Assembly: GCA_002269645.1 (NCBI GenBank)
Contig: NIVC01004061.1
Location: forward strand, 1-36,698
Direction of reading: 5' to 3'
DNA: 36,698 nucleotides
Source of the DNA: Macrostomum lignano
Lineage: Eukaryota
This document shows, one piece after another, positions 864-32,017 of the stretch. The notes beneath the pieces are model-generated. The model was not told the origin of the DNA and searched no databases. It saw only the letters and a list, made by a program, of their open reading frames with translations. Each line of letters opens with the position of its first letter. Position 1 is the stretch's first letter. The position numbers were made by a program, and so were the translations under genes.

Positions 864-967
864 TGTTGCTAGCTGGAATGCCAACAGGGCAGTTAGAGAG
901 TTGAGACCTGGTGAGATATACATATACAGGGTAACTAAGATGTATTCGAACTGATAATCTTCAAACA

Positions 968-1247
968 TCATGACGACTTGAAGGTCGGGGGTTCGATTCC
1001 CGATCCCATTGGAACAATTTGTGTCCTAGAGCAAGACACTTAACTCTGCATTGCTTCAGTTCACCCAGCTGTAAAATGGGTGCCAGCATTAGCTGGGGTA
1101 GTTGAGGGTGCATGTGGCGACCCCCCAGTCCTTGGACTGAACAGCTGTATGCAGCCTTCAGGTGGGCCATGCAAAAAGCTGTGGCTGAGCTGTCAGTTGC
1201 ACATCTGGCCCAATTGGGACAGGTGTAATTAATGATTATTATTATTA
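968..1247 (+). mobile_element. tRNA-derived CORE-type SINE (5' end possibly truncated) with (ATT)n tail
   Basis: B-box GGTTCGATTCCC at 990-1001. The segment GTGTCCTAGAGCAAGACACTTAACTCTGCATTGCTTCAGTTCACCCAGCTGTAAAATGGG (1021-1080) resembles the MIR/CORE domain. ATGATTATTATTATTA tail at ~1232-1247. No clear A-box. Confidence 0.75.
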
Positions 1248-2109
1248 ATCAAACATAATCCATAGGAAAAGGGTTTTAAAGTGTTAAAATTGCAGTGCTA
1301 TTTGATATCTGAGGACCAAATTCAGGACATTTGCTAGCATCAGTGAAAAAAGTTTAACATCAAATAAAATACCAACATCTCTATCTTACCTTTACTTTGT
1401 TGAGCCTTTTTAACCCACAGAAACTACAAAGTCTATAGATTTTATGTTTACAGATTATTCACACATAAAAAGTTAAAAGAAACCTTCAAATCATAAAAAT
1501 CCCAAGTAATTATAACATTATTGATACTTTACAAAAAATCCTTATAACTTATATTTTAAGAGTTATACCTTGGAAAAACAGGGTACCAATTTGGCATCTG
1601 GGGTCCAAATTGAGAATGCAAAAAGTAGGTTGATATGTTACAATAGCTTTTATTACAAAAGGTTAGTTAAGAATTAAAAATTCTTAATTGGCTCTGCATT
1701 ATATTATAGTGGCTCTGCATTCTACAATGACATTTATATTAAAACTTATCTTTTTTGTTTAAATTTTAAAAATACAAAAAGCCATTAATTTTAATTTCTT
1801 ATGAATGTTACAATTTTATTAAGCTTTTCCAAAAAAAAATGACAATAGTTTGCCACCACTTTGATGAAAACTAATATGTTATTTATTATATGATAGGGCC
1901 TATTTGATAGGGCCTAACAATATATTTAAATTAAATAAACAAATAGCAATGCTATAAAGATTAGTAGTCCTTTGCTTTTGCACATTTTTTCTAAAAATTT
2001 ATAATTTAAATAGCCTAAAATAGGTGCAAAGTCTTATTATTAGTTAGATAGGTAGTCTTAGTCAATGGTTAGCCAATGTAAGGCAGATACAATAAACTTA
2101 TAAATTAAG

Positions 2110-2840
2110 CTCTTATACACTAGATAGCCTATCAAATTTCTTAGATACCCATTTAAATGGGTGCTATAGACTAGGCCTACTTTCCCTTCTAACAACAACA
2201 ATTTCTTGCTATATCAACATGTGGGTTGATGCCAACTAGAGAAATGGCTCAATATGCTTGGTTATACTAACAATCTTGCCTTGCTATCCTAGAATGTCAA
2301 TGGTGCCTAGCATAAGCTAGACTGGCTAATGAGTATTGCAACCAGTGTTGGCCTAATGGTCAATATGTAGAAAACTATTGTGCTCTATATGCTAGATAAT
2401 ATCAAGGCTGCTTTTTTCTAGACATTGACAGATTTACTTAAATAATAAGTTGATATAATGCACACTAGCTTGCTATATGCCACCTTTAACATTAGCTACA
2501 AGCAAATTACCTATGTGGCATTCTAATGCTATATTAGCCTATTTGATCCCAGCAAATTATTATACCATTGGCAACTCTATCTGGTAGGCTATATTATTTG
2601 AGCTAAGTCATATTGCTTAAAACCAATATCAGAGATGTTTAACTCTCAATTAGAAATAAAATATTGTAAGCACCATATTAGCAGGGATAGGCTTAGATTT
2701 AACATTTTGTCAAATTTGCTTTTTGGCTGTTGCTAACACCCAATACTGCTAGTGGTATAGCCTATATTCCTACCTAGGCCCTGAAATGAGACATTATCCT
2801 AAACTTGACTAGCTAATATCTTTAGTTATTATTATTATTA
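2110..2840 (+). mobile_element. Dead RTE-like non-LTR retrotransposon 3' fragment (RT domain plus C-terminal region, internal deletions), heavily transition-mutated
   Basis: Frame from 2257 reads LGYTNNLALLS*NVNGA*HKLDWLMSIATSVGLMVNM*KTIVL, a decayed LGYADDLALL...GL.VN..KT RT core. Further on, LLYHWQLYLVGYII*A corresponds to the RTE-type RRRRL..AGH..R motif. The element ends in a (TTA)n tail at ~2825-2840. Confidence 0.85.
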
Positions 2841-3627
2841 AGCTTTTAAAAACAACTTAATTAAGTCTATCTTAGTGTACTATTGAAACCATGGTTAGTT
2901 GCTTATTTATAATTTATAGATAAATTATACTTATATATATATCAAGGTGTACTTCATATATCAAGTGCATAAAACAAAAATATTTAGACCAAGAAAGGTG
3001 CATAGAATATAGTTTTTTTGCTAGAAAAGGCAAAGCATATATATTGTTGGATTTAAATATAACAAGGATAAGCCCTAGCTTTAATGTCAATATTACTTTA
3101 TTAAAGCTTTTTTAGCAGAGTTAACGAAAAAAATTAATAAAGTTTAGCACAAATGTGCATTACATTTTATTTACAAAATAAGTTTAATTTTTCTATCCTT
3201 TCATTTTTCAGGATATTCACTCCCAGGTAAGAAATCTCAGAAACAGATGAAAAAGAATGAAAAGTTTACCATTGCCATGGCTAGCAGTACCTAACACTAG
3301 GCCTAACTAACAGTAACTGAGTAACAACAAAACAAAAATAGATAATTTGGTATCTGGATTCTGGGATCCAAAAACAGGATCCCAATTTAAAAGGCAGAAT
3401 TCCATGGCATACCTATGGGGTAAAAACACTGATGGTATGTTTAAAATATTCTAAACTAAAAAGCAAATCTTTTAGTATTTTACAGTATTTTATTTTTAAC
3501 TTTTTAAGTTAGTTAGAATATAGGATTGTCAACGGCCATAGCTGCCTAACAAAAGATGCGCGAAAAATTTAACGTAGCAAACAGACACTTAATATATAAC
3601 CGTGACATCATACCATCAGCCATCTTT

Positions 3628-3798
3628 CAGTAGCTGATTTAGAGGGGGCGCACAGGGCGCCCCCCCCCCGTTGAGTTGGATTTTTTTATATGGAAAATAC
3701 ACATTATCATGTACATATACTTGTACATGATATATGAATATATATGTACCTTAGTACTCTGCGCCCCCCCCGTTCAAAATTTTCTGGATCCGCTACTA
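3628..3798. mobile_element. hAT-type MITE (171 bp) with 8-bp target-site duplication
   Basis: Imperfect TIRs CAGTAGCTGAT...GGGGGCGC and GCGCCCCCCC...GGATCCGCTACTA. Identical CCATCTTT flanks at 3620-3627 and 3799-3806; an 8-bp TSD is typical of hAT. Confidence 0.8.
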
Positions 3799-4278
3799 CC
3801 ATCTTTGCAGCTTTGAATTGCTTTATTTCAATTTCAGCTTGTTTCGAGCATCCGTGGCTTGAGAGTGCACTTGATTCTTTGGAAAAATAATCATTTAAAA
3901 TAGTGTGTTTTAACAAATATGTACAGATGAAACTTCTTAAAATGCAGGAAAGTAATTAGTGCTGGTAAATCAGTATTATGCTATGCATTCTATTTTTTAA
4001 ATTAATCTCTAAGCCAATCTATTAATTTTTTAAAGTGTGTGATTTGCTCAGCTGTTATCCAATCACAGTCATTCGGAAAAGTTGCTGCTAAGTCTTAAGA
4101 CAGTAAGGAGCTTCTGTGCGTGCAATTTCTTCATGTTATTCCGATCTTCCGTCCCCACTTCTCGATAGAAAATATTAGTTTCCTTGGTCCTCTATAAGAT
4201 TCGACAAATAGTTTTAACTTACTCTAGACTTTATTACTTCCTTTACACCTCGCATTTACAATCGCCGACTCGCTCATC

Positions 4279-4352
4279 ATGACTATGGACAGCACACAAA
4301 ACGGGAATACGGAAGAGGAAGTTATCAATGGGAGTGGATCGAATGATCCGGG
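4279..4352 (+). CDS. msi: Musashi homolog, coding exon 1 (MTMDSTQNGNTEEEVINGSGSNDPG)
   Basis: ATG at 4279, open frame to donor GG|GTAAGC at 4353. Phase 2 joins to G-KMFIGG; the NDPG-KMF junction parallels HDPC-KMF of vertebrate MSI1. Confidence 0.85.
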
Positions 4353-4823
4353 GTAAGCCCTGTTTTTTCGGTGCAAGCAATTATTTTTAGTAAAGGGTAA
4401 TTAACTTCGCTTTTGCCATTTGCAGTACAGCTTTATAACTTTCACTGAAATACACGTACATGTTATCTTTAGTACATCGATAAAAAAACTTTTCTTTTTC
4501 GCATAATTTTTGTTCTTTAGTGCACAAAGTTTGCAAATTCGTTCACTTGGCGCATGTTGTATCAAAATATGACACTAAAATGATGTTGCCACTGACTGTA
4601 GCTAAGGAATGACGATGTGGCCACTTGCCCTAACTTAAACAACTACACGTATACAACCCGCTGCATCGGGCAGGAGCTGCGAGCAGTTCCTAGCTAGCTA
4701 AGCTAGCTCGTCTTGTAACAGATTTGAGCTGCGATGAGATTTCTGAAATTTCTGAATTCTATATTTGAGTTCTATTTTTACTTGTCTCAGCTGATCTGAT
4801 CTAAATGCCCGACTCATTTGCAG

Positions 4824-4864
4824 GAAAATGTTCATTGGTGGCCTCAGTCCCACTACAGCGCCAG
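4824..4864 (+). CDS. msi: Musashi exon 2, RRM1 RNP2 (KMFIGGLSPTTAP)
   Basis: TTTGCAG| acceptor, G|GTCAGT donor, 41 nt, phases 2 to 1. Confidence 0.93.
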
Positions 4865-4967
4865 GTCAGTTCCCGATATACTTGAAACAATAAATAAATA
4901 CATTGCTAATCCTCGTTAATCAATCAATTACACTGTTCACTAGAAAGCACTGCTCTTTCTCTTTCAG

Positions 4968-5049
4968 AAGTATTGCATCAGTATTTCGCCAAATTCGGGG
5001 AGATCAAGGAGTACATGATCATGAAGGATCCCATCTCCAAACGGTCCAG
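4968..5049 (+). CDS. msi: Musashi exon 3 (EVLHQYFAKFGEIKEYMIMKDPISKRSR)
   Basis: CTCTTTCTCTTTCAG| acceptor, AG|GTAAAC donor, 82 nt; homologous to [28 protein letters not shown]. Confidence 0.95.
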
Positions 5050-5832
5050 GTAAACATCATGCAAATCGGCTTACAGATGCTCTGCTGAACTAGAAATAGA
5101 TGCAGCATAAAGAGCGGACTGTAGGCTTGCGAGTGCAGTAAAGACTGCATCGGTATGTGCGGCCCTCTGCTGCCTCCCTGTCTCCGCGATGCCTCCCGTC
5201 TCTTTCGCTCCTTTACTTTTCTCCCCCCAGCAATTCCGCAAGGCCGAAGGGGAAGCTTGGGGCTTGGGGCCGGCGGCGCATTTATGGGAAAATCGGGCTA
5301 TAGGGGGGAGCATCGCCTCCTCGCCACCCCCCCCCTGACGTCTACCCTCCTGGATCCCTCCTCCCCGACTTTCCCTTCCCTGTTTACCCCTCTGTGTATA
5401 TCTGAACCTCCCCTCCGCTCCATCCCAGGTGCTGGCATACCCATAATCCAACATCTCCCCTTAGTCGATAATGCCGCTGCCTCCGGCGGTCCGCGGGGTT
5501 TAGCAGGCAAGAAGAAATGAAGCGTGTACCGAGGCTGGGGCGCTATATACTGTGCCGTCTGAGGAAGACAGAGGGAAAGTGCCATACAAGGCAGCAGCAG
5601 TTCTGGGGGTGGGGAGATGTTAACTCGCGCGCCAAAGCTTTCACGATCTGCAGCCGTCTATTAATAGTTTTCCATGTGTCTTTCACTGAAGGAATGCTTT
5701 TGAACTTTATAAGACGAAAAAAATGTCAATAAATAGTGTGACAATGTCGCGGCCATTCCAAAGCAGACTGGCAACTCAACTCCTGTGTGGTTCTCAATTA
5801 CTCGAATTATTAATAACTTCCCATTATTTCAG

Positions 5833-5917
5833 GGGATTTGGTTTCGTCACTTTCTCGGAGCCGAGCTCCGTGGATCGTGTGCTGGAGAGCGCGCCGCACT
5901 TCCTTGAATCGAAAAAG
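5833..5917 (+). CDS. msi: Musashi exon 4, RRM1 RNP1 ([29 protein letters not shown])
   Basis: TTATTTCAG| acceptor, AAG|GTAACT donor, 85 nt, RNP1 octamer RGFGFVTF. Confidence 0.95.
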
Positions 5918-7497
5918 GTAACTCCAGGGGGAGCTGTGGGACGAGTTTGAACTGATATCCTGCTGAATCATGTGTGGGAGTGTCACAGTTCGCTTGATAA
6001 CTGCTGAATAAGCTTGGAAAGGAGGTATTGGGGAGTCGAACAAAGGGGAGACACACGTGCACTGCAGAGCTAGGATTGGTGCTGGGGGAATTGCACATTG
6101 AACCCTGGATTGCTGCTAGCTGATTTAGAGATGAGTACTGGGAGAACGATGTAGATGTTACAGTTTCGGCTCAGGCAGGCAGGCAGACAGTCAGCTCCGG
6201 CCCATATAGCTTTGGATGTTGGCTTATCCCTGCCTTGCATTGCTCCCTCACCGTGTCTTCCCTACGCACCTACCTGCCGTCCCGCTTGTCCGCATCGTCA
6301 TAAACCTATATATAAATGAGCCCCTAAGCCAGTTGGAGGAGCAACTTGAAGAGAGTGAAACCCCAGCATGCGATCCTGGCCTCAATAAAGCGCGGGAGTA
6401 TGCTTACATCTCCCCAACTTCCCCAAAGCCCATCTCCCATTTTTAGTGCCAGCACGAGTATAGGCGCCCCTGTTTGTGCGTTTCTTCGTAGTCAGCAGGA
6501 TTACTCTGCTCAGGGTCCATGAATCACGCTCTACACGGCCCAAGCGTACAAGTCCGCTGCCGGGTTGGAAGACTTAGCAGAGAAAGGCCTGGGACAGAGA
6601 GAGAGAGAGCGAAAGCAGGGGAAGTGAGAGGTGCATTGCCACGATTTCTCCCCCCATCTCATAGCAATTCTGCCCCCGACTCTTCCCAAGGCGCATGCAG
6701 TAATGAGGTGGAAATCCAGCTGATCAATTATTCATACCGTCTCATCGCCCACGCTCAGCCTCGTCTGCACAATTAGGCACTTCGCCCTGGGCTCCACCCG
6801 CTAACCTGATGCTGCAGCCTCATCAACTGCGGCCTCTTCTACGTATTCGTCCTCTCTACCAGCCTCTGATATCATCTATTGTTAGTCCCGGCCTTTTAAA
6901 TTACTGTCTGGAAGCGGAGGAGGGCCTGCTAGTTCTCTGACTAAAGCTTCAAAAAATAGATCGGGCGCAGCACTCGACGGCAAAAAGCATTCAGCTGAGT
7001 TAACGTGTTTTCCAGAAGCATCTGAGCTCTCTGTCTGCCTCTGTGTGCGCACTCTAATTGTTATTTGGCAACAGCTTAATGGCTTGGGTTAGAAAGAAAC
7101 GCTTCGGACAGTTACTAAAGACAGGTTCTAAACGGCTGTCTACCGGTTTATACCCGTGTTTACGATGCTGGGCCCTGCTTCTGTGTTTTGGCCTGTCAAG
7201 TGTCACTTGCAGCCGAATCGGCGGCAGTTGCAGCAGCAATCCAGGGGTCGCCGCCGCCTCTCAACCGCTCCCTGCCCTGTGAAGTAGAGATGGACCGGGC
7301 GGCCATTCATTCACGCAAGCGTGTGGGTGGGGGTTCACCGCTTGTACTGCTGGATCCATGCGGTATTGAACCGCTTTCCAGCATCAGCTGCACACTTAGT
7401 CCGCATGCCTGCATGTAACTCTGACATCAGCGCTCCAAAGTGCATCATGTTCTTCTTAAACTGACTGCTTATCATTTTTTCTAACCTCGATTTGCAG

Positions 7498-7545
7498 ATC
7501 GACCCTAAAGTGGCCGTGCCTCGGAAGCCGGGCCAGGGTGCCAAG
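7498..7545 (+). CDS. msi: Musashi exon 5 (IDPKVAVPRKPGQGAK)
   Basis: TTTGCAG| acceptor, AAG|GTGAGC donor, 48 nt; IDPKVA.PR is the Musashi RRM1 C-terminal signature. Confidence 0.93.
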
Positions 7546-10132: not shown

Positions 10133-11372
10133 GCAACTCCCCACTCTGCTGCAACTCCCTCCCCACTCTGCTGCAACTCCCTCCCCACTCTGCTGCAACT
10201 CCCTCCCCCACTCTGCTGCAACTCCCTCCCCCACTCTGCTGCAACTCCCTCCCCCACTCTGCTGCAACTCCCTCCCCCACTCTGCTGCAACTCCCTCCCC
10301 CACTCTGCTGCAACTCCCTCCCCACTCTGCTGCAACTCCCCACTCTGCTGCAACTCCCTCCCCCACTCTGCTGCAACTTTCTCCCCACTCTGCTGCAACT
10401 CCCTCCCCCACTCTGCTGCAACTCCCTCCCCACTCTGCTGCAACTCCCTCCCCCACTCTGCTGCAACTCCCTCCCCCACTCTGCTGCAACTCCCTCCCCA
10501 CTCTGCTGCAACTCCCTCCCCACTCTGCTGCAACTCCCTCCCCACTCTGCTGCAACTCCCTCCCCACTCTGCTGCAACTCCCTCCCCACTCTGCTGCAAC
10601 TCCCCACTCTGCTGCAACTCCCTCCCCCACTCTGCTGCAACTCCCTCCCCCACTCTGCTGCAACTCCCTCCCCACTCTGCTGCAACTCCCTCCCCCACTC
10701 TGCTGCAACTCCCTCCCCCTCTGCTGCAACTCCCTCCCCCACTCTGCTGCAACTCCCTCCCCCACTCTGCTGCAACTCCCTCCCCCACTCTGCTGCAACT
10801 CCCTCCCCCACTCTGCTGCAACTCCCTCCCCCACTCTGCTGCAACTCCCTCCCCCACTCTGCTGCAACTCCCTCCCCCACTCTGCTGCAACTCCCTCCCC
10901 CACTCTGCTGCAACTCCCTCCCCCACTCTGCTGCAACTCCCTCCCCCACTCTGCTGCAACTCCCTCCTCACTATGCTGTAACTCCCTCCCCACAACTCTC
11001 TCCCACAACTCTCTCCCACAACTCTCTCCCACAACTCTCTCCCACAACTCTCTCCCACAACTCTCTCCCACAACTCTCTCCCACAACTCTCTCCCACAAC
11101 TCTCTCCCACAACTCTCTCCCACAACTCTCTCCCACAACTCTCTCCCACAACTCTCTCCCACAACTCTCTCCCACAACTCTCTCCCACAACTCTCTCCCA
11201 CAACTCTCTCCCACAACTCTCTCCCACAACTCTCTCCCACAACTCTCTCTCACAACTCTCTCCCACAACTCTCTCCCACAAATCTCTCCCACAACTCTCT
11301 CCCACAACTCTCTCCCACAACTCTCTCCCACAACTCTCTCCCACAACTCTCTCCCACAACTCTCTCCCACTC
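10133..11372. repeat. Compound C-rich minisatellite: ~22-23-bp CTCCCTCCCCCACTCTGCTGCAA (to ~10975), then 13-bp CTCTCTCCCACAA
   Basis: Two abutting arrays sharing CAACTC; source of the 300-556 aa pseudo-ORFs in several frames. Confidence 0.95.
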
Positions 11373-13484: not shown

Positions 13485-14380
13485 AATATTTGTGATATGC
13501 TTGTAGGTTTGTGATGTCCTTGTAGGTTTGTGATGTGCTTGTAGGTTCGTGATGTGCTAGTAGGTTTGTGATGTGCTTGTAGGTTTGTGATGTGCTTGTA
13601 GGTTCGTGATGTGCTAGTAGGTTTGTGATGTGCTTGTAGGTTTGTGATGTGCTAGTAGGTTTGTGATGTGCTTGTAGGTTTGTGATGTGCTTGTAGTTTT
13701 GTGATGTGCTAGTAGGTTTGTGATGTGCTTGTAGGTTCGTGATGTGCTAGTAGGTTTGTGATGTGCTTGTAGGTTTGTGATGTGCTTGTAGGTTCGTGAT
13801 GTGCTAGTAGGTTCGTGATGTGCTAGTAGGTTTGTGATGTGCTAGTAGGTTTGTGATGTGCTTGTAGGTTTGTGATGTGCTTGTAGGTTTGTGATGTGCT
13901 TGTAGGTTTGTGATGTGCTAGTAGGTTTGTGATGTGCTTGTAGGTTTGTGATGTGCTTGTAGGTTCGTGATGTGCTTGTAGGTTTGTGATATGCTTTGTG
14001 ATGTGCTAGTAGGTTTGTGATGTGCTTGTAGGTTCGTGATGTGCTTGTAGGTTTGTGATATGCTTGTAGGTTTGTGATGTGCTTGTAGGTTCGTGATGTG
14101 CTTGTAGGTTTGTGATGTGCTTGTAGGTTTGTGATGTGCTAGTAGGTTTGTGATGTGCTAGTAGGTTTGTGATGTGCTTGTAGGTTTGTGATGTGCTTGT
14201 AGTTTTGTGATGTGCTAGTAGGTTTGTGATGTGCTTGTAGGTTCGTGATGTGCTAGTAGGTTTGTGATGTGCTTGTAGGTTTGTGATGTGCTTGTAGGTT
14301 CGTGATGTGCTTGTAGGTTTGTGATGTGCTTGTAGGTTTGTGATATGCTTGTAGGTTTGTGATGTGCTTGTAGATTTGTG
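13485..14380. repeat. Minisatellite, 19-bp unit GTGATGTGCT(T/A)GTAGGTT(T/C)
   Basis: Highly homogeneous tandem array with AT-rich flanks. Confidence 0.97.
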
Positions 14381-16695
14381 ATTTTGTTGGCTCTTTTAAG
14401 ATTTTGAGAAGTTTAGACTTCATGATATTAGATTATAGTTTAGTTCAGATATTGTTAAATTGTTGTGGGAAGACCAGCACGTCCTTACCTGCCTCGCAGA
14501 ATAGTACAGGTGGTTCGCCTACTTCAAACAGTTCACTCTGCTCTGCCTGTAGAAACTTGCACATAATAAATAAGACACAATCCAGACACTGTCACCATGG
14601 CGACAAGGACCTGCTGTCCTGTGCCCCCCTTCATTCGATTTCGGTTTAATTTCGCCAGCAGAGCGGACTTCCGACTTTCTGTTGCTAAATTTCTTGACAA
14701 GAAAAATTGGGCTCAACTTTCGCAGGTGGCAGTTGACGGTCACTGAGCCCCCCTGGCAAGCCTAGAATGCCCTGCTGTCTACAGCCCGTTAATATTTTTT
14801 CCTGTCCTACTGCAAAGACCGGCTCAGCCCTGTCTATCTTGTCTAGGACTACAGTTCTTCAAGCAAACAACATTAGGCCAGCCAGTATGACAGGGGCAAG
14901 AAGCGGTCAGACCCCGCCCCCCAGTGGCCATTGGGGTATTATTTTGCCTGCTTCTCATGTTTAGTGCCAACTAATGCCATTTGCATTTTGCTCTCCGCGG
15001 CCAGCTGTCCGAGGCTGCCAGTGGACAGAGAGAGACGCACACTCAGCACACAATAGGCCACTTTGGACTGCGTGACTATCTGTTAAATGTTTTCATTTCT
15101 TTACTAGCAGTAGAGCAGTTTGAATTTGCCACTCTAAATATAGTTGAATTCGTTGGGAAATAAGTCCGGACCAGCTCAGTTTTGAAGTCTCTCTCGATCT
15201 GTAGAAAAGTTTTTTGGGAAAGGAAATTGCGAGCAGTTTCAGCCCTTGAATGGAGCTGTAGTGCCAAGCTCTGTCAGATCTGACTGCAGACTGCCCGGGC
15301 CTGGTTGAGCTGCCCTGCCAGTGAGCTAAAGGCGAGTTTGTAAAGGAATTTCCTGCCTACGCGGAGGCAGAGAATCTGCAAGCCCTGAGCCTTTCTTACC
15401 CTTTAAAAAAGAGAGCTCAACTCCTGGTTCAGAGGCCGGCTTCCGCTATGATTGTATGGCACTGCGCCCAGCCACCCATAATTCAATCAGCATCCTTCTT
15501 ATTGACCTAAGTGATTGTATTTCGCGGCCGCTGGAGGCCCTGAGCTGGCCGCTGCTGCTTGTCCCTGATTGATGCTTTTCTATCGTCTGCTGGAACTCCA
15601 ACTTGCCTCTTTTTAGCCTTCAAAATGAAGAAGTTGAAGAACTACAGCAAGCGGGGTCTCCAAGTCCAACAAAACCCCCAACCAGCCAACCGCTCACGGC
15701 CTCCTCCTCTCAGCACCTTCCGTCCGTCTCTCCCAAGTCTTCTTCTCCTACTCATTCTTTCTCCCAAAGCCGTCTCCGGATCCCTGCTCAAGGCTTTGCC
15801 CCGGCCTCAACAACAATTGGAGCCCGGGCCCGCTGTGCTCCCGCCCTTGAGGCCCTGAGTTCCTTCTCCTCCTCTTCTGTCTCTCTATATAGAAATCAGC
15901 CCTGCCCTGTGCATGCAATGCGCCACCTTCCTGCGCCGGAGCCAACACGAGAGTTAAAAAGAGGGAGCATTCAAAAGTCAGAGCCAAGAATTATCAGCTC
16001 AAGCACACAGAGGCTTTTATCTATATATCGACGGCTTACAACAGCAGCTCTGCTTTTAGGCAAATAACTCACGAACAGGCACCCAGGCCGCCAGTCAGCC
16101 AGCACAACAACACCGCAGGGACCAAGTCACCTTAACTCTACTACTACTATAGAGCCCCTCCTAATAGCGGCCCCGGTTCTCTCCACTCGCCTCTTCTCAC
16201 CCCGCGCACCGAGGCCCAGCTTTGAGTGGCGCGCTGCAAGCAGAGGAGAACAGAATTAAGAATATTAGATAAGAAAGAGAAGACAGAAAAGAAGCGGGCC
16301 CCAAGCTCCGTAGCAGATTCGAGATCGCAGCGGAACACTCCACCGAGCAGCCAGAGAGCCGCCAGCCGCCTCAACCCCCGCCAGACCAGTTGACTCATCT
16401 ATACATAGCGCCAGCGATTGCCTCTGCTGCTTCGAAAGAAGATTTTTAGCCACTCCCGGCCCTGGCATTGTCACCGCTGAGACTTTTTATTGCCAAGTCC
16501 GAATTTCGATTAGTTTCAACTCAAGGCCAAGGGAATTCCTGCGCTGGCTAAAGCATCATATAAGTAGCTTATTTAGCCTGCATAAATAGTTGGTTGAGCA
16601 GCTGACAGACCGCGGCACAAATGTACACCACAGTAGCACCCAGCATGACTAGCTCAGCCTCCCTCATCACCAATTCGCTCTCTCCGTCTCAACAG

Positions 16696-16791
16696 CAGCA
16701 GCTGCAGAAGACCAAGAAGGTGTTCGTTGGTGGCATCAGCAACAACACCACAGCTGAGGAGCTCAAGGAGTACTTCTGCAAGTACGGCAAG
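16696..16791 (+). CDS. msi: Musashi exon 6, RRM2 start ([32 protein letters not shown])
   Basis: Acceptor CTCTCTCCGTCTCAACAG| with tandem CAG alternatives (exon starts 16696/16699/16702), AAG|GTGAGC donor. Exact 5' boundary uncertain. Confidence 0.9.
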
Positions 16792-16824
16792 GTGAGCGCA
16801 CAATTCCTTGTACAGCTCTGTTGC

Positions 16825-16834
16825 TATCTATCTG

Positions 16835-16869
<35 letters not shown>

Positions 16870-17619
16870 GGGAGCACGAGAAATGCCCGCAGACGAATTG
16901 CCCGCCGAGATTTGCCCGCAGGAGATTTGCCCGTGGAGATTTGCCCGCCGAGCTTTTCCCGCGGAGATTTGCCCGCAGTGCATTTTGCCCGTGAGCGAAT
17001 TGCCCGTGGAGATTTGCCCGCCGAGAATTGCCCGCCGAGATTTGCCCGCAGTGCAATTTTCCCGCGAGTGAATTGCCCGCGAGCGAATTGCCCGCCGAGT
17101 TTTTTCCCGCCGAGGTTTGCCCGCAATCCTTTTTTTGCAGCGCATTTGGCAGCTAGATTCTGTCCATACATTGCTCCCCCCAAAATATGCATTTGATATG
17201 CAGTTACTATCAAAACGTTTTGATCGTGTAAATCTCTTTATTAAGATTAACACGTACTAAGCATTGGGAAGGCAATGCAGACAAAATCTGCCGCGTCGCT
17301 AAATGCGCTGCAGGAAAAAGGATTGCGGGAAAATCTCGGCGGGAAAAAACTCGGCGGGCAATTCGCTCGCGGGCAATTCACTCGCGGGAAAATTGCACTG
17401 CGGGCAAATCTCCGCGGGAAAAGCTCGGCGGGCAAATCTCCACGGGCAAATCTCCTGCGGGCAAAATGCACTGCGGGCAAATCTCCGCGGGAAAAGCTCG
17501 GCGGGCAAATCTCCACGGGCAAATCTCCTGCGGGCAAATCTCGGCGGGCAATTCGTCTGCGGGCAATTCTCATGGACCCATCTATCTATCTATCTATCTA
17601 TCTATCTATGTATTTATCG

Positions 17620-20339: not shown

Positions 20340-21332
20340 TTCGTGACTGGATTCATGAGTTCATGAGTGAGTTTATGAATGAGGTTATGAGTGAGTTTAT
20401 GAATGAGGTTATGAGTGAGTTTATGAGTGAGTTTATGAGTGAGTTCATGAGTGAGTTTATGAGTGAGTTTATGAATGAGGTTATGAGTGAGTTTATGAGT
20501 GAGTTCATGAGTGAGTTTATGAATGAGGTTATGAGTGAGTTTATGAGTGAGTTTATGAGTGAGTTCATGAGTGAGTTTATGAGTAAGTTTATGAGTGAGT
20601 TTATGAATGAGGTTATGAGTGAGTTCATGAGTGAGTTTATGAGTGAGTTTATGAGTGAGTTTATGAGTGAGTTTATGAATGAGGTTATGAGTGAGTTTAT
20701 GAGTGAGTTTGTGAGTGAGTTCATGAGTGAGTTTATGAGTAAGTTTATGAGTGAGTTTATGAATGAGGTTATGAGTGAGTTTATGAGTGAGTTCATGAGT
20801 GAGTTTATGAATGATTTTAATGAGTGAGTTCATGAGTGAGTTCATGAGTGAGTTTGTGAGTGAGTTCATGAGTGAGTCTGTGAGTGAGTTTATGAGTGAG
20901 TTTGTGAGTGAGTTTGTGAGTGAGTTCATGAGTGAGTTTGTGAGTGAGTTCATGAGTGAGTTTGTGAGTGAGTTCATGAGTGAGCCTGTGAGTGAGTTTA
21001 TGAGTGAGTTTGTGAGTGAGTTTGTGAGTGAGTTCATGAGTGAGTTTGTGAGTGAGTTCATGAGTGAGTTTGTGAGTGAGTTCATGAGTGAGTTTGTGAG
21101 TGAGTTCATGAGTGAGTTCATGAGTGAGTTTGTGAGTGAGTTCATGAGTGAGTTCATGAGTGAGTTTGTGAGTGAGTTCATGAGTGAGTTTGTAAGTGAG
21201 TTCATGAGTGAGTTTGTGAGTGAGTTCATGAGTGAGTTTGTGAGTGATTTCACGAGTGAGTTTGTGAGTGAGTTCATGAGTGAGTTTGTAAGTGAGTTCA
21301 TGAGTGAGTTTGTGAGTGAGTTCACGAGTGAT
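20340..21332. repeat. Minisatellite, 12-bp unit (A/G)TGAGTGAGTT(T/C)
   Basis: Visible tandem array; gives the MSEF/NSLT pseudo-ORFs. Confidence 0.97.
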
Positions 21333-21442
21333 TAAATTATTGAGTTGAAAGCAGATTTTCTGGTTGAACTCTAGAGTTTGAGCGAATGACCAACGGACTG
21401 TCACAGTTCAAGCCAAAGTATTTCTGCAACCAAACGCTTCAG

Positions 21443-21662
21443 ATCGAGAGCTGCGAGCTGATGATGGACAAGACGACCAATCGGCACAGGGGATTCGGCT
21501 TCGTGACATTCGAGATGGAGGAATCGGCCGATAAAGTGTGCGAAATTCATTTCCACGAGCTCAACAGCAAAATGGTTGAGTGCAAGAAGGCACTGCCGAA
21601 GGAGGTCATGATGCCCTATACAAGCATCAAGGGCCGCGGCGGAGCGCTGCTCAGACCTCTGA
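21443..21662 (+). CDS. msi: Musashi exon 7, RRM2 core ([73 protein letters not shown])
   Basis: CGCTTCAG| acceptor, A|GTAAGC donor at 21663. [16 protein letters not shown] and [23 protein letters not shown] are diagnostic for Musashi. Confidence 0.97.
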
Positions 21663-24784: not shown

Positions 24785-24924
24785 CATGCGAAACCCGAGT
24801 TTCCTGGCGTCGTTCCGACGATTTTCTGCGATTAACAGCTTTTTGGTAAGTCAATTGCCTGCTAGTGCCTATTGCCTAGAAAGACAGGGGCTAGGTCATG
24901 GGGTGCGTGTCTGGAAAGGGAGTG

Positions 24925-25728
24925 AGATGGCTGTCTGGAGAAGGAGTGAGGTGGCTGTCTGGAGAAGGAGTGAGGTGGCTGTCTGGAGACGAAGTGAGGT
25001 GGCTGTCTGGAGAAGGAGGGAGGTGGCTGTCTGGAGAAGGAGTGAGGTGGCTGTCTGGAGACGAAGTGAGGTGGCTGTCTGGAGACGAAGTGAGGTGGCT
25101 GTCTGGAGAAGGAGTGAGGTGGCTGTCTGGAGAAGGAGTGAGGTGGCTGTCTGGAGAAGGAGGGAGGTGGCTGTCTGGAGAAGGAGGGAGGTGGCTGTCT
25201 GGAGAAGGAGTGAGGTGGCTGTCTGGAGACGAAGTGAGGTGGCTGTCTGGAGACGAAGTGAGGTGGCTGTCTGGAGAAGGAGGGAGGTGGCTGTCTGGAG
25301 AAGGAGTGAGGTGGCTGTCTGGAGAAGGAGTGAGGTGGCTGTCTGGAGAAGGAGGGAGGTGGCTGTCTGGAGAAGGAGGGAGGTGGCTGTCTGGAGAAGG
25401 AGTGAGGTGGCTGTCTGGAGAAGGAGTGAGGTGGCTGTCTGGAGAAGGAGGGAGGTGGCTGTCTGGAGAAGGAGGGAGGTGGCTGTCTGGAGAAGGAGTG
25501 AGGTGGCTGTCTGGAGACGAAGTGAGGTGGCTGTCTGGAGACGAAGTGAGGTGGCTGTCTGGAGAAGGAGGGAGGTGGCTGTCTGGAGAAGGAGTGAGGT
25601 GGCTGTCTGGAGAAGGAGTGAGGTGGCTGTCTGGAGAAGGAGGGAGGTGGCTGTCTGGAGAAGGAGTGAGGTGGCTGTCTGGAGAAGGAGTGAGGTGGCT
25701 GTCTGGAGGAGTGAGGTGGCTGTCTGGA
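24925..25728. repeat. Minisatellite, 24-bp unit GAGGTGGCTGTCTGGAGA(AG/CG)(G/A)AG(T/G), downstream of the msi stop
   Basis: Visible tandem array; source of four 280-350 aa pseudo-ORFs. Confidence 0.97.
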
Positions 25729-28655
25729 AAGAGTGACGAGACATGACGCGTCAGACATTCGATGCGGAGAAGGGCGAACTTGAGCGCAGTGAACTGATTC
25801 CCCTTTGCATTGAAATCCGCAGACTGTAACAGGCCGGGCGGCCCAGTTCAACCACTCGGAAGATAAAAAATTACAAAACAAATTCAGAGAAAGCCTGGAA
25901 AGTTGCAATTTCTGAGTTATTAAAAAAACTTTACTTTTATATTATATATAATCATAATGTCTACGTTAAATTTTATTATAAAAGTTTTATTTGACCGCGG
26001 AGTTTCGGCGCGCCAGTGTGCCCGCGTGTTAGTGCTTGTTCCACAGCGTGTGACGTCGTCGCCTGTACATACGCGCCATTCAACCTTTTATTTCCCTTCC
26101 CCTTTGTCCCGCCCCCGCACTTCAAGCCACTATTTTTATGCGATTATCTCCCTATTTTCAAATTGATAATCCTACTGACTCTCCTACCGCGCTTTGCCCC
26201 AATACCGAAGGCTTTTGTGTGTTAAACAGTGCCCCAGGCTTTGCACCTGATATTTTGCTCATGCTATCGAGTGTTTTGCATCGAAATTTCTATTAATACG
26301 CGTGATGTTTGTCAGTGTTCCGTTCTAATGATTACTGCTATTCGATTATTATTAATATTATTACTGTTTACTAATCATTTCTGTGTCTTTATATCTGTGC
26401 TAATTTTTCATTGAGCACGCTGAGCACGCTAGGCATCAATAATCGTGAGACACTTGCAGTTTTGATTACACAGAAAGCGAACTCGCCCACAGCTCTAGCC
26501 GCGTTTGAACCCCCCCCCCCCGTTTCTGCAGCTGTTCCCCCGAACTTTGCTGTCTTCTGTCTCTCCTATCCTTAAACCGGCGGATTCTCACGCGCACTGC
26601 CCCCAGCTCAAGTGTGCTCAAAAAAAGATTTGCTCGCTGTTGCGTGATCCCTAAGCCTCAAGCGCCATATGCAGAAGCGTCCTGCTTTCTCTGGCCTGGG
26701 GCGGGTGGCGACTAGTCTGGGGAAGATCAAGGACTAATCCCTGATCTGCCGGCCACCCGACTCACCCCCCCCCCCAACCTTCATCTCTCTGAAACCCAAG
26801 CACTGTGCTCAATTCTTGAAACAGTGGCTACACTGGCTCATGAGCAAGGCTTCGGTAGCAGCAGCTGTACCTGCAGCACTGATTACAGGGCTACTGACAA
26901 AACTGTAGGGTTTGCAGAGCGAGCAGCTACTCGCGTATCAACCATCAAGCAGCTCAAGCCACACAGATCAGTGACTCATTGCTACACAGTAAGCCTTCCC
27001 CGAGCTTCTCCATCCCTCCATCCTCATTTTTGAGTTTTTTTTCAAGCAATATCTGTGCAGCAAACATATTCTAATGAAAATTATCTTCCTAAGCACTTCT
27101 TGTTTGCAGAATTTGTTTTATTAATTACCAGATTATGTACTCTGCATTTTTATTGCACTGGCTGCAGCACAGTCGCTTTCGTTTAACTAATTATGCTAAT
27201 TATGATTAAAATACCTATTTATGTTATTATTGGACCTCAAGCAATGGTCTCTATCGCACCTTGTCAGAATGTTGAACAATTATTAAACATAAGGCAAAGC
27301 GAATCTGCTCAAAAACTTCAGAATCATGAACCTGTCTGCCCACCCCTAGCGCAAGCCTCCCTCTCTCTCTCTCTCTCTTACCCATTGTCTGTTTTTGCGA
27401 ACTGCAAATTTGATTTTGCCTCTAAATTTTGCTGATGCTCTTCTGTTTTGTTTTACACGGTTCGTTGCGAATATTTATTTACACAACTCGGGCTTGAATG
27501 CGGCTCGACCCTGCGACACGGTCCAATCTGAGCTTAACAAAAACTGGCCATCATCATCATCAACTGCTCGACCCCCAACTCGCCAGCTTCACTGCTCTGC
27601 TGTTTGTTGGAATTTTTGTTTTCATTTCCTCTTTTTAACACTTGGCGATTTCTGAAACAAAAAAACACAAAATGCAGTTTTGCTACATAAGCCGCGTACT
27701 TGAGCTGCGCATCGATTGTGATGCTATTATTGAACTGGCTAAATACACACACTCACACTCAAGCTAACTGGATTGAGTCTGACTTCACCACTGCAGCCAC
27801 CGTTCATATGAGGAAGCTCTCGATCGATAGCGAAATTCTTTGGCCAACTGACTTGCCGAAGTCGTGAAGGGCTTGGTATCAAGGTGTTAAAATTTCAAAC
27901 ACTTCATGAAAATCTTCAGACAAGGAAAAATATGTTTAGACGTATCGCTTTAAAACAAATAGCCACTTTTCGGCTAAAACAGTATTCTTGAAATAGCTTC
28001 CCCGGGTGTTGAGTTTTGGAAGGATCCAGCCCAGTGCGAGTGCCGCACAGCCATAGAAGAAGACTGTCGCAAATTTTTTTTGTTGCGTCTATTTTTGTTG
28101 GATGGAATAAAAAGGACGGCAAACAGCTGGGGCTGCGGACGGCAACTGCTGTTTGCACGGCCTTTTGCTTGCTTGCTGCCTGCCTTGGAATTCAAAACTT
28201 TTAGCAACACCAACAGCAGCAGCAGCAGCAGCAACAACAACTGCGGCGGGGGAACTGACCGTCCGAGTTTACCAGCAGTCACAATGCACCCCCCCCCCCT
28301 GCTTCGGCACTGAAATCGGAGGGAATTGGGAAGTCAAGAGGAGCTCCCCAACAGCGGAGAGACAGATGGGGGACTGGGCGGGACTGGCGGCTTGTCATCG
28401 AAACCGAGTGCTGTTTATGCCCCGGCGAATGCGGATTCCCGGCCAAAGCTCCGAATCCCCTGGGTTCGAGGGCCCACGAGCCGCGGCTCCTTAGAGTCCC
28501 TCTCGACAAATCCTCGACAAATCCGCCATCTAGAGACTGGCAGAGAGAACGCCGGAGGGAGAGACGGAGAACTAATTTGAAATCCCTGGGAAATGAGCCT
28601 GGGCGATTAACGGCCTCCCCACAGGCTTTGCTGAGCAGCGCGTGTCTCCTCTTGA

Positions 28656-29419: not shown

Positions 29420-30498
29420 TTGTCACTGGCCTTTGCGTGTGTCTGCCCACTGTCACTGACCTCTGTGTGTGTCTGCCTGCTGTCACTGACCTCTGTGTGT
29501 GTCTGCCTGCTGTCACTGGCCTCTGTGTGTGTCTGCCCCCTGTCACTGACCTCTGTGTGTATCTGCCTGCTGTCACTGACCTCTGTGTGTGTCTGCCTGC
29601 TGTCACTGGCCTCTGCGTGTGTCTGCCCCCTGTCACTGGCCTCTGCGTGTGTCTGCCTGCTGTCACTGATCTCTGTGTGTGTGTCTGCCTGCTGTCACTG
29701 ACCTCTGCGTGTGTCTCCTTCCTGTCACTGACCTCTTTGTGTGTCTGCCTGCTGTCACTGGCCTCTGTGTGTGTGTCTGCCTGCTGTCACTGGCCTCTGC
29801 GTGTGTCTGCCTGCTGTCACTGGCCTCTGCGTGTGTCTGCCTGCTGTCACTGACCTCTGTGTGTGTGTCTGCCTGCTGTCACTGGCCTCTGTCTGTGTGT
29901 CTGCCTGCTGTCACTGGCCTTTGCGTGTGTCTGCCTGCTGTCACTGACCTCTGTGTGTGTGTCTGCCTGCTGTCACTGGCCTCTGCGTGTGTCTGCCCCC
30001 TGTCACTGACCTCTGCGTGTGTCTGCCTGCTGTCACTGATCTCTGTGTGTGTGTCTGCCTGCTGTCACTGACCTCTGCGTGTGTCTCCTTCCTGTCACTG
30101 ACCTCTTTGTGTGTCTGCCTGCTGTCACTGGCCTCTGCGTGTGTCTGCCTGCTGTCACTAACCTCTGTGTGTGTGTCTGCCTGCTGTCACTGGCCTCTGC
30201 GTGTGTCTGCCCCTTGTCACTGACCTCTGCGTGTGTCTGCCTGCTGTCACTGACCTCTGTGTGTGTGTCTGCCTGCTGTCACTGACCTCTGCGTGTGTCT
30301 CCTTCCTGTCACTGACCTCTTTGTGTGTCTGCCTGCTGTCACTGGTCTCTGTGTGTGTCTGCCCCCTGTCAGTGACGTCTTTGTGTGTCTGGCCCTCTGT
30401 CACTGACCTCTGTGTGTGTCTGCCCTCTGTCACTGACCTCTGTGTGTGTCTGCCCTCTGTCACTGACCTCTGTGTGTGTCTGCCTGCTGTCACTGATC
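29420..30498. repeat. Minisatellite, ~30-bp unit CTCTG(T/C)GTGTGTCTGCCTGCTGTCACTG(A/G)C
   Basis: Visible tandem array with variable GT length. Confidence 0.95.
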
Positions 30499-32017
30499 TC
30501 AGTTAATGTGCGTATGTCCCTTGTCACCCGCCTCTCAAATATTTGTTTCAAATGTCAAGCAATGTCACTTATTTGTTTATAATCTTAGAAATTTTCCTGT
30601 CTGTCTTGAAATGCCTGCCTTGGCGGCACCAGAGAAGCAGGCTAGCTCACTAATAATCTTCTGCCTGCCATGGCTAACAAGATGCTTTGGACGCGACTTA
30701 GTCGCTTTCAAAGGAGCCACAGGCTCTTTGCAGCTTCGAGTTGAAAATAATTAGACAGGCGAGTTTTGCTAAGACACGGAGCCGTTCAGAGGCGGGACGC
30801 AGGAGATGGAGAAAGCAGACAAAGGCCCCTCGGCCGGTCTTCGTGCCTCAAATCTCTAATCAGCAGCCTCTTTCGCAAACTGTGAGATCTCACTCTGTGT
30901 CTCCATCCGACTTGGTGTGAGACCCCCTCATTAGCAGGTGGCTTCACTTTCGACGAGCTCAATGCGTGACGTCATCGAAGCCTCTCGGTCCTTTGGGTGG
31001 ATGAGAAGAAGCTTGCTGAGCAGAAAGTATGCAATGAAAACGAAGCATGCATGGCAGAATTATGATGGAAGCGCGCAGTGACAAACTTCTTCAGGGTTTT
31101 GGATGCTCCCCCCTCTGCTTCTGCTTTTCTCTGTCTTAATCCGGGGGATTATCCGCTGCTCACAGGGCCCCCGTATAGCCCGGGTCCTTATATCGGAGCT
31201 CATCTCCGCCCCGCTTGTGCTCCGAACGATAGAAATAGAAAATGAGCAAGAGCTGCGCTCGTTTGATGCGGAGTTACTGCCCGGCAGACTGCCCAGGCTC
31301 TCCATATTCTACTCATTCCCGAGTGCCGCACTGATGGCCGGCTGCCATCGGCAGGCAGTTTTTTTCTCAGTCAGAAATCTGCGCCCCTTCATCTTCTGCC
31401 CATCAGCTGCCCATTCACTGGCTGGCTTGGACTTTCTATCGCTATCCCACATATATCCCCTTAGTCCTTCGTTTTGTCTAACGAATTCCAGGGCAAAATC
31501 AGCCTAGGACCAGGGGAAGGCAGATATAGGGGAGATGGCGGAGAGAGACTGCCGCCCGACACTATATGCCGCTATAGTAAGTGTTGACGCAAAGCAGCAG
31601 CACCCAGCCTCTGCTCCGCATCTCTCCCTCTCTCTGCCCGCTGATTGACAGAGCCACCCCCCCCCCCTCCCTAGGCCCTTTTGACCAGCCTCCCGCTTCA
31701 TCTCCTCTCTCGTGCCTTTGCCGTCTCCTTTTTCCACTGATTTCTTTCCCATGGGGGCCTCGGTGCGGCTCCTGTGGGGCTGAGGGATAATGCAAAAGAA
31801 GTGGGCAGGAGCGCCAAGTTGGAGTGCCGAAATTGCTTTTTCTCTCTGCCTTCTGAGGGCGGGTCCGAAATCCCTCCCAGCTCTCTTTGGCCTCTGCTTG
31901 ACTTTCCAATCCATATCTGTCTGCCCCTGATGTGACCTTCCCGACTTCTTCAGTAGACTGGCAGTTTTTGGTCTGTCTGGCCGGAACCTGGGAGGCCTTT
32001 TTAAAAATAAATAGAGA

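Follow-up and report, generated by a model that had tools for sequence, protein, structure and literature searches.

The window analysed here, the whole 36,698-nucleotide stretch of contig NIVC01004061.1 of Macrostomum lignano, is a metazoan locus with the RRM exons of msi (Musashi) on its forward strand. Most of it has about 50% GC and is dense in minisatellites, the intron DNA outside the satellites also has about 50% GC, and the observed/expected ratio (o/e) of CpG lies between 0.4 and 0.8 over most of its length, i.e. below 1. A reverse-transcriptase (RT) fragment of an RTE retrotransposon, of the type without long terminal repeats (non-LTR), is situated some 2 kb before the first coding exon of msi, within a compositional island that is AT-rich and almost free of CpG. 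An earlier note on this DNA took positions 2110-2840 for a retrotransposon copy hypermutated in the manner of fungal repeat-induced point mutation (RIP), and as the best candidate for an undescribed genome-defence system. Our analysis confirms the transition-eroded RTE copy, and the figures go beyond what a sceptic might have anticipated, but an undescribed RIP-type defence system is not established.

The island (1251..3530, unstranded, 2280 bp) has 29% GC and contains a single CpG where about 48 would be expected (o/e 0.02). Its edges are sharp at the 100-bp scale: the left one coincides with the tail of a SINE-like element (short interspersed nuclear element), and the right one is at about 3530. 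The RT fragment is located roughly in the middle, with 943 bp at 27% GC and no CpG on its left (1251..2193) and, on its right, 690 bp of the same GC content with one CpG and no recognised homology (2841..3530). Neither RT nor endonuclease homology reached significance by profile-to-DNA alignment in 1251-2193 (z about 0) or in 2713-2900. No homologue of the island block was found elsewhere in the window by blastn, tblastx or a purine/pyrimidine-coded search, and two metagenome scans, one with a purine/pyrimidine-degenerate RT pattern and the other with the SINE core, gave no match. The idea that the damage was specific to the repeat does not agree with this composition: the whole 2.3-kb island is CpG-free but for that one site, and the flanks outside the RT are even more AT-rich than the RT itself (26-27% against 34% GC). 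That the RT, near the centre, is the less AT-rich part agrees with its having come later, with a higher GC content, and decayed under a pressure common to the whole domain. The rates fitted below would bring the flanks from about 40% GC, the value of 3531-5100, to 27-30%, and an insert from about 55% to 35%, as observed. A domain-wide pressure that started with or after the insertion is the simplest reading, and it fits transposon-nucleated silencing that spreads to neighbouring DNA. The segment adjoining the eroded island on the right (3531-5100) has 39% GC and a normal CpG content (o/e 0.84), and in this it looks like an unmethylated promoter or 5' region.

The fragment in the centre is a 5'-truncated, dead piece of an RTE retrotransposon, about 650 bp long. 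It was compared with a profile of 15 real RTE reverse transcriptases, gathered by database search with two RTE sequences, which retrieved thousands of proteins and, in an exhaustive search with one of the two, more distant members of the family; scoring was by log-odds profile-to-DNA alignment with frameshifts allowed, calibrated on shuffles, in piecewise local alignments (a global alignment of the whole block with low gap penalties was over-gapped and unreliable, and was dropped). Two blocks were recovered on the forward strand. Block A (2194..2412, profile columns 316-386) covers the region before the catalytic YADD box, the box itself and the AQ..L..E.A..GL.xN..KTE stretch; its only gaps are two insertions of one codon each, which follow KT close to the 3' end, and it contains four in-frame stops. 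Its score is z=8-10 with an undirected model (45.5 bits, z=10) and z=12-16 with a C>T+G>A model, the reverse strand being at the level of the shuffles. Block B (2419..2712, columns 464-556) carries the motifs WTLT..RLDG.YTR.LR..LN.SW ... RR.R.AGH ... GRP in the frame of block A, with codon-sized gaps only and five in-frame stops; its z rises from 3.6 in the undirected model to 10.3 when C>T+G>A is allowed, as compared with 5.3 for the G>T/C>A control. Between the two, at 2413..2418 on the same strand, about 78 profile columns (~234 bp) are missing by an in-frame deletion. A plain hmmsearch of the six frames of the window returned blocks A and B as its two best domains (independent E-values 1.4e-4 and 0.23), colinear and in one frame, and the order and spacing of the RTE motifs (YADD box, GL.xN..KTE, WTLT, RR.R.AGH) are correct. 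Single RTE proteins gave only a weak tblastn match (E=0.74 over 2263-2376), Pfam found no match in the three raw frames of 2000-2900, and a hand-repaired RT peptide used as a homologue query yielded no candidate with enough common words.

One reading frame is kept across 2194-2712 (about 520 bp), with nine in-frame stops where about 12 would be expected by chance at that composition, and the lack of any frameshift in spite of these stops argues that non-transition events were few. The RTE homology proposed in the earlier note is well supported, but it extends over 2194-2712 only, instead of 2110-2840, and the frame slips described there were not seen; motifs spotted by eye further upstream (AFDSV, LYK and GVLQGDTLAP, around 1975-2190) were not significant in the profile alignment. 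All thirteen stops listed in that note are present and nine of them belong to the RT frame; the last four (2679-2700) fall in a frame that the alignment does not use, and a further in-frame stop, at 2524, was missing from the list. The quoted codons TAT ACT AAC AAT (2263-2274) and TAC CAT TGG CAA (2563-2574) are indeed at these positions. The former is the YADD box (forward strand), which now reads YTNN through three G>A changes at first codon positions, each preceded by a third-position pyrimidine. The apurinic-endonuclease domain and the N-terminal RT motifs were not found upstream (1251-2193), which is consistent with 5' truncation. At the other end, a (TTA)5 run (2826..2840, forward strand) occurs about 105 bp past block B, where the end of the RTE open reading frame (ORF) and of the element would be expected from the 35 profile columns left after that block; this tail points only weakly to an RTE 3' end, since the region is AT-rich. 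Its similarity to the (ATT)4 tail of the neighbouring SINE-like element suggests a partnership between this SINE and the long interspersed element (LINE).

One argument previously offered for hypermutation was that the substitutions could be reversed by T>C and A>G alone. On its own this argument does not discriminate: in unpenalised scoring the real sequence reaches 544, as compared with 530+-15 for dinucleotide shuffles. Free reversal can make almost any AT-rich sequence look hypermutated, hence the need for calibrated scoring. When C>T and G>A are allowed at 0.15-0.3 per site, the score gains 11-14 bits in block A and 23 bits in block B, whereas a G>T/C>A transversion model, which is equally AT-enriching, costs 7 bits in block A and gains 6 in block B. 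The transition model is 17-21 bits above the transversion model, and a reverse-transition model lowers the score.

Rates were estimated by maximum likelihood on the fixed alignment, with ancestral codons drawn from the profile, CpG pairs decaying sequentially and other sites treated as independent. Over 161 codons, the rate of non-CpG C>T/G>A changes (a) is 0.30-0.33 per site and that of T>C/A>G changes (c) is 0.03; transversions and surviving CpG are both about 0, and the choice of ancestral codons is GC-rich (0.67-0.69). When the fit is limited to the 102 codons that the undirected model aligns as well, a is 0.25 and c is 0.01. In leave-one-out simulations, in which a family member was back-translated and mutated at known rates, a and c were recovered without gross bias and transversions were underestimated about two-fold. 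Likelihood-ratio tests reject equality of the two rates (a=c; 2dlnL 37 and 20) and also a two-fold difference (a=2c; 13.2 and 8.4). For a=3c the result is marginal (5.4 and 4.2), and a=5c is compatible with the data (1.0 and 1.5). The GC>AT excess is thus secure above 2-fold, with a lower confidence limit of 2- to 3-fold. The GC>AT transitions are not confined to ancestral CpG sites, in agreement with what had been claimed. Parsimony counts, limited to columns conserved in at least 75% of the family and small in number, go in the same direction: GC>AT transitions affect 14/38 sites overall, 4/17 sites that were never CpG and 6/9 first-position Gs after a pyrimidine, against 2/34 for AT>GC; two transversions were counted, and several more lie in columns set aside as doubtful. 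The certain non-CpG changes include TGG>TAG at 2419 (W) and CAT>TAT at 2590 (H). They bear out the view that non-CpG sites were hit, but the examples first given for it, in the YADD box, are ambiguous, because the pyrimidine before each changed G was possibly once a C. Only about 3-6% of the A/T sites of the RT have changed and, together with the single frame over 520 bp, this indicates that by such clocks the copy is not old. In our opinion the non-CpG component of the damage is suggestive but not secure.

Both strands are similarly affected, as had been proposed (C>T 0.28-0.33 and G>A 0.22-0.27 per site), and the two types are intermixed along the copy (runs test z=+1.5), which rules out kataegis-like, strand-coordinated clusters. 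Ranked by 3' neighbour, the affected contexts are CpG (about 1) >> CpA 0.39 > CpT 0.24 > CpC 0.11 (2dlnL 8.2, 2 df), and by 5' neighbour ApC 0.58 > CpC 0.33 > TpC 0.26 > GpC 0.12 (2dlnL 11.7, 3 df); these estimates come from a few dozen events, and CpA is partly confounded with former CpG. The CpA preference put forward as a hallmark of RIP did not hold. In 2051-2840, TpA/ApT is 1.15, (CpA+TpG)/(ApC+GpT) is 1.48 and the composite index is -0.33, whereas a RIP signature has a substrate index below 1.03 and a composite index above 0; CpA and TpG are not depleted, the classical signature fails and CpG is the main target. The RT is enriched in TAG/CTA (51 against 24 expected) and CTAG (10 against 2.0 expected), with a TpA o/e of 1.25, as expected from the conversion of CAG, CTG, TGG and CGG sites.

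Other repeats of the window offer an internal contrast. The tRNA-derived-SINE-like element that borders the island (approximately 915..1250, forward strand) has about 50% GC, six CpGs (o/e 0.32) and a TpG/CpA o/e of 1.43, and is not eroded; a box-B-like motif, GGTTCGATTCC, lies near 978 and the body ends in (ATT)4 at 1232-1250, but neither ARAGORN nor Rfam recognised the element. About 450 bp from the island, a segment on the reverse strand (297-800) is also uneroded, with 69% GC, dense CpG (o/e near 1), no introns and three frameshifts. It encodes a fragment of an animal-type mitochondrial short-chain acyl-CoA dehydrogenase, ACADS (Pfam Acyl-CoA_dh_N, 3e-16), and its best matches in PDB are rat and human SCAD at E ~3e-53, as compared to ~1e-27 for bacterial enzymes. 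Bacterial contamination, which its GC content might suggest, is thus ruled out, and the segment looks like a processed pseudogene of ACADS. Finally, at least 19 minisatellite arrays, with periods of 12-30 bp and up to about 1 kb long, fill the msi introns (for instance 10139-11370, 13489-14382, 20356-21331, 24908-25736 and 29421-30500). To obtain a control spectrum, 19 arrays were aligned to concatenated consensus units and the variants polarised by majority, an in-phase slicing having given too few events. This yields GC>AT changes at 48/179 non-CpG G/C positions, AT>GC at 35/175 A/T positions and 68 transversions. The resulting ratios, 1.3 for GC>AT:AT>GC and about 1.2 for transitions to transversions, differ from those of the RT, although gene conversion and mis-polarisation possibly distort the comparison. 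SINE, 19 tandem arrays and ACADS retro-copy are all unaffected, which argues against a process triggered purely by homology, since the arrays and the retro-copy should then have been hit; flanks without recognisable repeat homology are affected. We would say that the minisatellites, the clock-like changes and the neighbours, three internal comparisons, mark the island as special.

The explanation that we favour, although we would grant it slightly less than an even chance, is transposon-nucleated silencing with spreading cytosine methylation and deamination. A 5'-truncated RTE fragment of about 650 bp would have inserted upstream of msi and nucleated a local silenced domain, with cytosine methylation in the germ line that spread into about 0.9 kb of the left flank and 0.7 kb of the right. 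Methylated cytosines would then have been deaminated, with the loss of every CpG of the domain and, more slowly, C-to-T changes on both strands in CpA, then CpT, then CpC contexts, so that the insert went from about 55% to about 35% GC and the flanks to about 27%, few other changes being gained. Methylation as the cause, and the insert as the nucleator, are both suggested by the pattern. The non-CpG component would probably come from a lower level of non-CpG methylation or from a general GC>AT bias and not from a dedicated deaminase. Several observations speak for this scenario: the loss of CpG from the island next to the normal o/e of 3531-5100 and the value near 1 of the ACADS fragment, the position and composition of the insert, the fitted rates, the symmetry and intermixing of the two strands, the unbroken frame, the order of affected contexts, which matches the preference of DNMT3-type enzymes (CpG >> CpA > CpT > CpC), and a precedent. 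Methylation is described as a cause of C-to-T erosion both in transposable elements and in the host DNA around them, and CpG methylation and CpG loss as spreading around Alu elements (PMC7431005).

Several points weigh against it. Methylation is deduced here from sequence and not observed; the erosion of the flanks is deduced from composition alone, there being no ancestor for comparison; and everything rests on one copy, aligned to a protein profile and not to the consensus of its own family. The non-CpG C>T rate of about 0.3 per site, against about 0.03 in reverse, exceeds what CpG methylation explains, and we know of no description of appreciable germline non-CpG methylation in invertebrates. 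A CpG o/e of 0.02 is below that of heavily methylated vertebrate DNA. Moreover, invertebrates generally have little intergenic CpG methylation and little CpG loss (PMC7431005). It should also be stressed, against any special process, that a 2- to 3-fold excess overlaps the ordinary AT-biased spectra found in animals by mutation-accumulation studies.

A more radical hypothesis is that of a dedicated animal hypermutation system, RIP-like with a DNMT-type enzyme or with another cytosine deaminase aimed at transposon or heterochromatic DNA, acting on C in CpG and non-CpG contexts of both strands, in one or a few bursts, with leakage of about 1 kb into the flanks. We consider it unlikely. In its favour are a non-CpG transition rate of about 0.25-0.31 at G/C sites, compared with 0.01-0.03 at A/T sites, the near absence of transversions and the lack of frameshifts, the involvement of both strands and the excess of TpA and CTAG in the RT. 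The GC>AT:AT>GC ratio is significantly above that of the minisatellites, and an AT-rich equilibrium is not the norm of a locus that otherwise has about 50% GC. However, the RIP indices are negative, the dominant target is CpG and not CpA, the certain non-CpG counts are small (4/17 against 2/34), the other repeats escaped, the basis is a single copy, and a five-fold GC>AT bias, within the ordinary AT-biased range of animals, is not rejected. The papers listed by literature searches on RIP-like mutation in animals were on fungal RIP, and none of those listed described an animal case. What this hypothesis would add is a germ-line, transposon-nucleated C-to-T hypermutation in an animal, on both strands, at CpG and non-CpG sites (CpA > CpT > CpC), with a spread of about 1 kb, and we see only a minor chance of it. 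Non-CpG methylation followed by deamination, a deaminating methyltransferase or a deaminase could each be its route. That the outcome would resemble fungal RIP with a trigger other than homology alone is, likewise, improbable. The opposite hypothesis, that of ordinary neutral decay over a long time, sees in the island the oldest unconstrained DNA of the window, close to an AT-rich and CpG-poor mutational equilibrium, the GC-richer remainder being young satellites, transposons and functional sequence; we regard it as quite unlikely. It has in its favour flanks more AT-rich than the RT, a loss of CpG that is regional, a CpG o/e below 1 over most of the window and a GC>AT to AT>GC ratio of 3-5 that is not firmly rejected. 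It is difficult to reconcile with a copy whose single frame and rarely changed A/T sites do not look old, with introns of about 50% GC outside the satellites, with a minisatellite spectrum that shows no strong AT bias, and with the advantage of the transition model over GC>AT transversions. The spectrum of the RT does differ from that of the minisatellites, but a five-fold bias is compatible with the data.

The island might also be foreign to the locus, by misassembly or because it came, by transfer or relocation, from an AT-rich genome or compartment poor in CpG, in which the RTE had already decayed. Its composition jumps sharply at both edges and no homologue of it exists elsewhere in the window, even in purine/pyrimidine code. 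Nevertheless, the tail of the RTE, (TTA)5, looks like that of the adjacent and normally composed SINE, (ATT)4, which would be expected of a LINE and a SINE sharing a genome, the bacterial-looking segment at 297-800 turned out to be animal-type ACADS and gives no sign of contamination, and the msi exons follow on the same strand, contiguously. Such an origin, which we think very unlikely, would in any case only shift the question of hypermutation to another genome. Least of all do we believe in editing of single-stranded cDNA by an AID/APOBEC-type enzyme before integration. That a retrotransposon was hit, and by cytosine deamination, would agree with it, but there is no strand bias and the two types of change are intermixed, the order of 5' contexts does not start with TpC or CpC, and the flanks outside the retro-copy are eroded too; the earlier note had already set this mechanism apart as single-stranded, and rightly so. 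APOBEC editing leaves a more than 10-fold excess of sense-strand G>A, a signal absent from 19 invertebrate genomes, and non-LTR elements are reportedly restricted mostly without deamination (PMC4866542).

Returning to transposon-nucleated silencing, the island has much in common with the methylation-driven CpG erosion known in animals (PMC7431005): complete CpG loss in and around a transposon, extending into the flanks on both strands, beside a promoter-like region that retains its CpGs. It differs by its roughly 0.25-0.31 transitions per non-CpG G/C site, by a CpG o/e under the vertebrate equilibrium, and by being a local exception in a locus of about 50% GC. With the RIP of ascomycetes (RID/DIM-2) it shares dense two-strand C:G>T:A changes in a transposon copy with many stops, a sharp-edged AT-rich island with possible leakage into the flanks, and a preference for CpA among non-CpG contexts; unlike in RIP, CpG is the main target, CpA/TpG are not depleted, the indices are negative and the other repeats of the window are untouched, in an animal host and in one copy. 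Dependence on repetition, the defining property of RIP, is not favoured by those other repeats. Such a pattern is out of the ordinary in an animal locus, but a fungal-style system of repeat-induced mutation cannot be demonstrated from a single copy. The RIP-like hypermutation of basidiomycete transposons at TpCpG (PMC3318451) is a cytosine hypermutation likewise centred on CpG-containing contexts, with TpC, where here the 5' context is ApC over TpC. Vertebrate APOBEC editing also inactivates retroelement copies by clustered cytosine deamination, but it produces sense-strand G>A in TpC or CpC contexts and in retro-copied DNA only (PMC4866542), whereas the changes seen here are symmetric, intermixed and reach the flanks. 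The RT itself, compared with the RTE clade (the 'LQGDTLAP' group, BovB), has motifs colinear with the 15 members, a 5' truncation and a short tandem-repeat tail, but it is dead: it has nine in-frame stops and a mutated catalytic box, has lost about 78 codons and lacks the endonuclease domain.

Fungi are known to inactivate transposons by directed deamination of cytosines, and in vertebrates such inactivation takes the form of single-strand cDNA editing. For animals, the accepted view is that methylation erodes CpGs only, and that in invertebrates this effect is slight outside genes. If a total, transposon-centred loss of CpG is truly accompanied by a several-fold excess of non-CpG C>T on both strands, this would mean either mutagenic non-CpG methylation in the germ line of an invertebrate or a new defence based on deamination. 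The CpG component matches a known process; a new process of non-CpG deamination is a rather distant prospect. The suggestion of a heterochromatin-directed methylation/deamination system was close to the explanation that we prefer, except that its CpG part is nothing new. If, on the contrary, the island is ordinary, the case is an example of a pitfall, in which the free T>C/A>G repair of an AT-rich sequence mimics a hypermutated gene.

A few other features of the window can be mentioned. Many of the minisatellite arrays have an extreme strand asymmetry (GC skew up to +-0.6), and the long ORFs over them are repeat artefacts. At the island's right edge, an AT-rich stretch has a G/C-run motif on either side, GGGGGCGCACAGGGCGCCCCCCCCCC (3640-3670) and CTGCGCCCCCCCCG (3752-3775), and no inverted repeat was detected there. 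The RRM exons of msi lie at about 4822-4862, 4958-5050, 5831-5926, 7498-7527, 16720-16797 and 21440-21637 on the forward strand; the first coding exons (4822-5050) are very short, with an intron of about 95 bp between them. The closest database proteins are invertebrate Musashi fragments, with at most 76% identity, the best being from a spider, with limpet and fluke proteins lower down. Directly downstream of the RRM2 exon (16720-16797), a 266-nt inverted repeat (arms 16869-17134 and 17315-17580, 94% complementary, spacer 180 nt) consists of 14/73-bp tandem units, with (CTAT)n and (ATCT)n runs at its borders; it has the potential to form a large intronic hairpin or cruciform.

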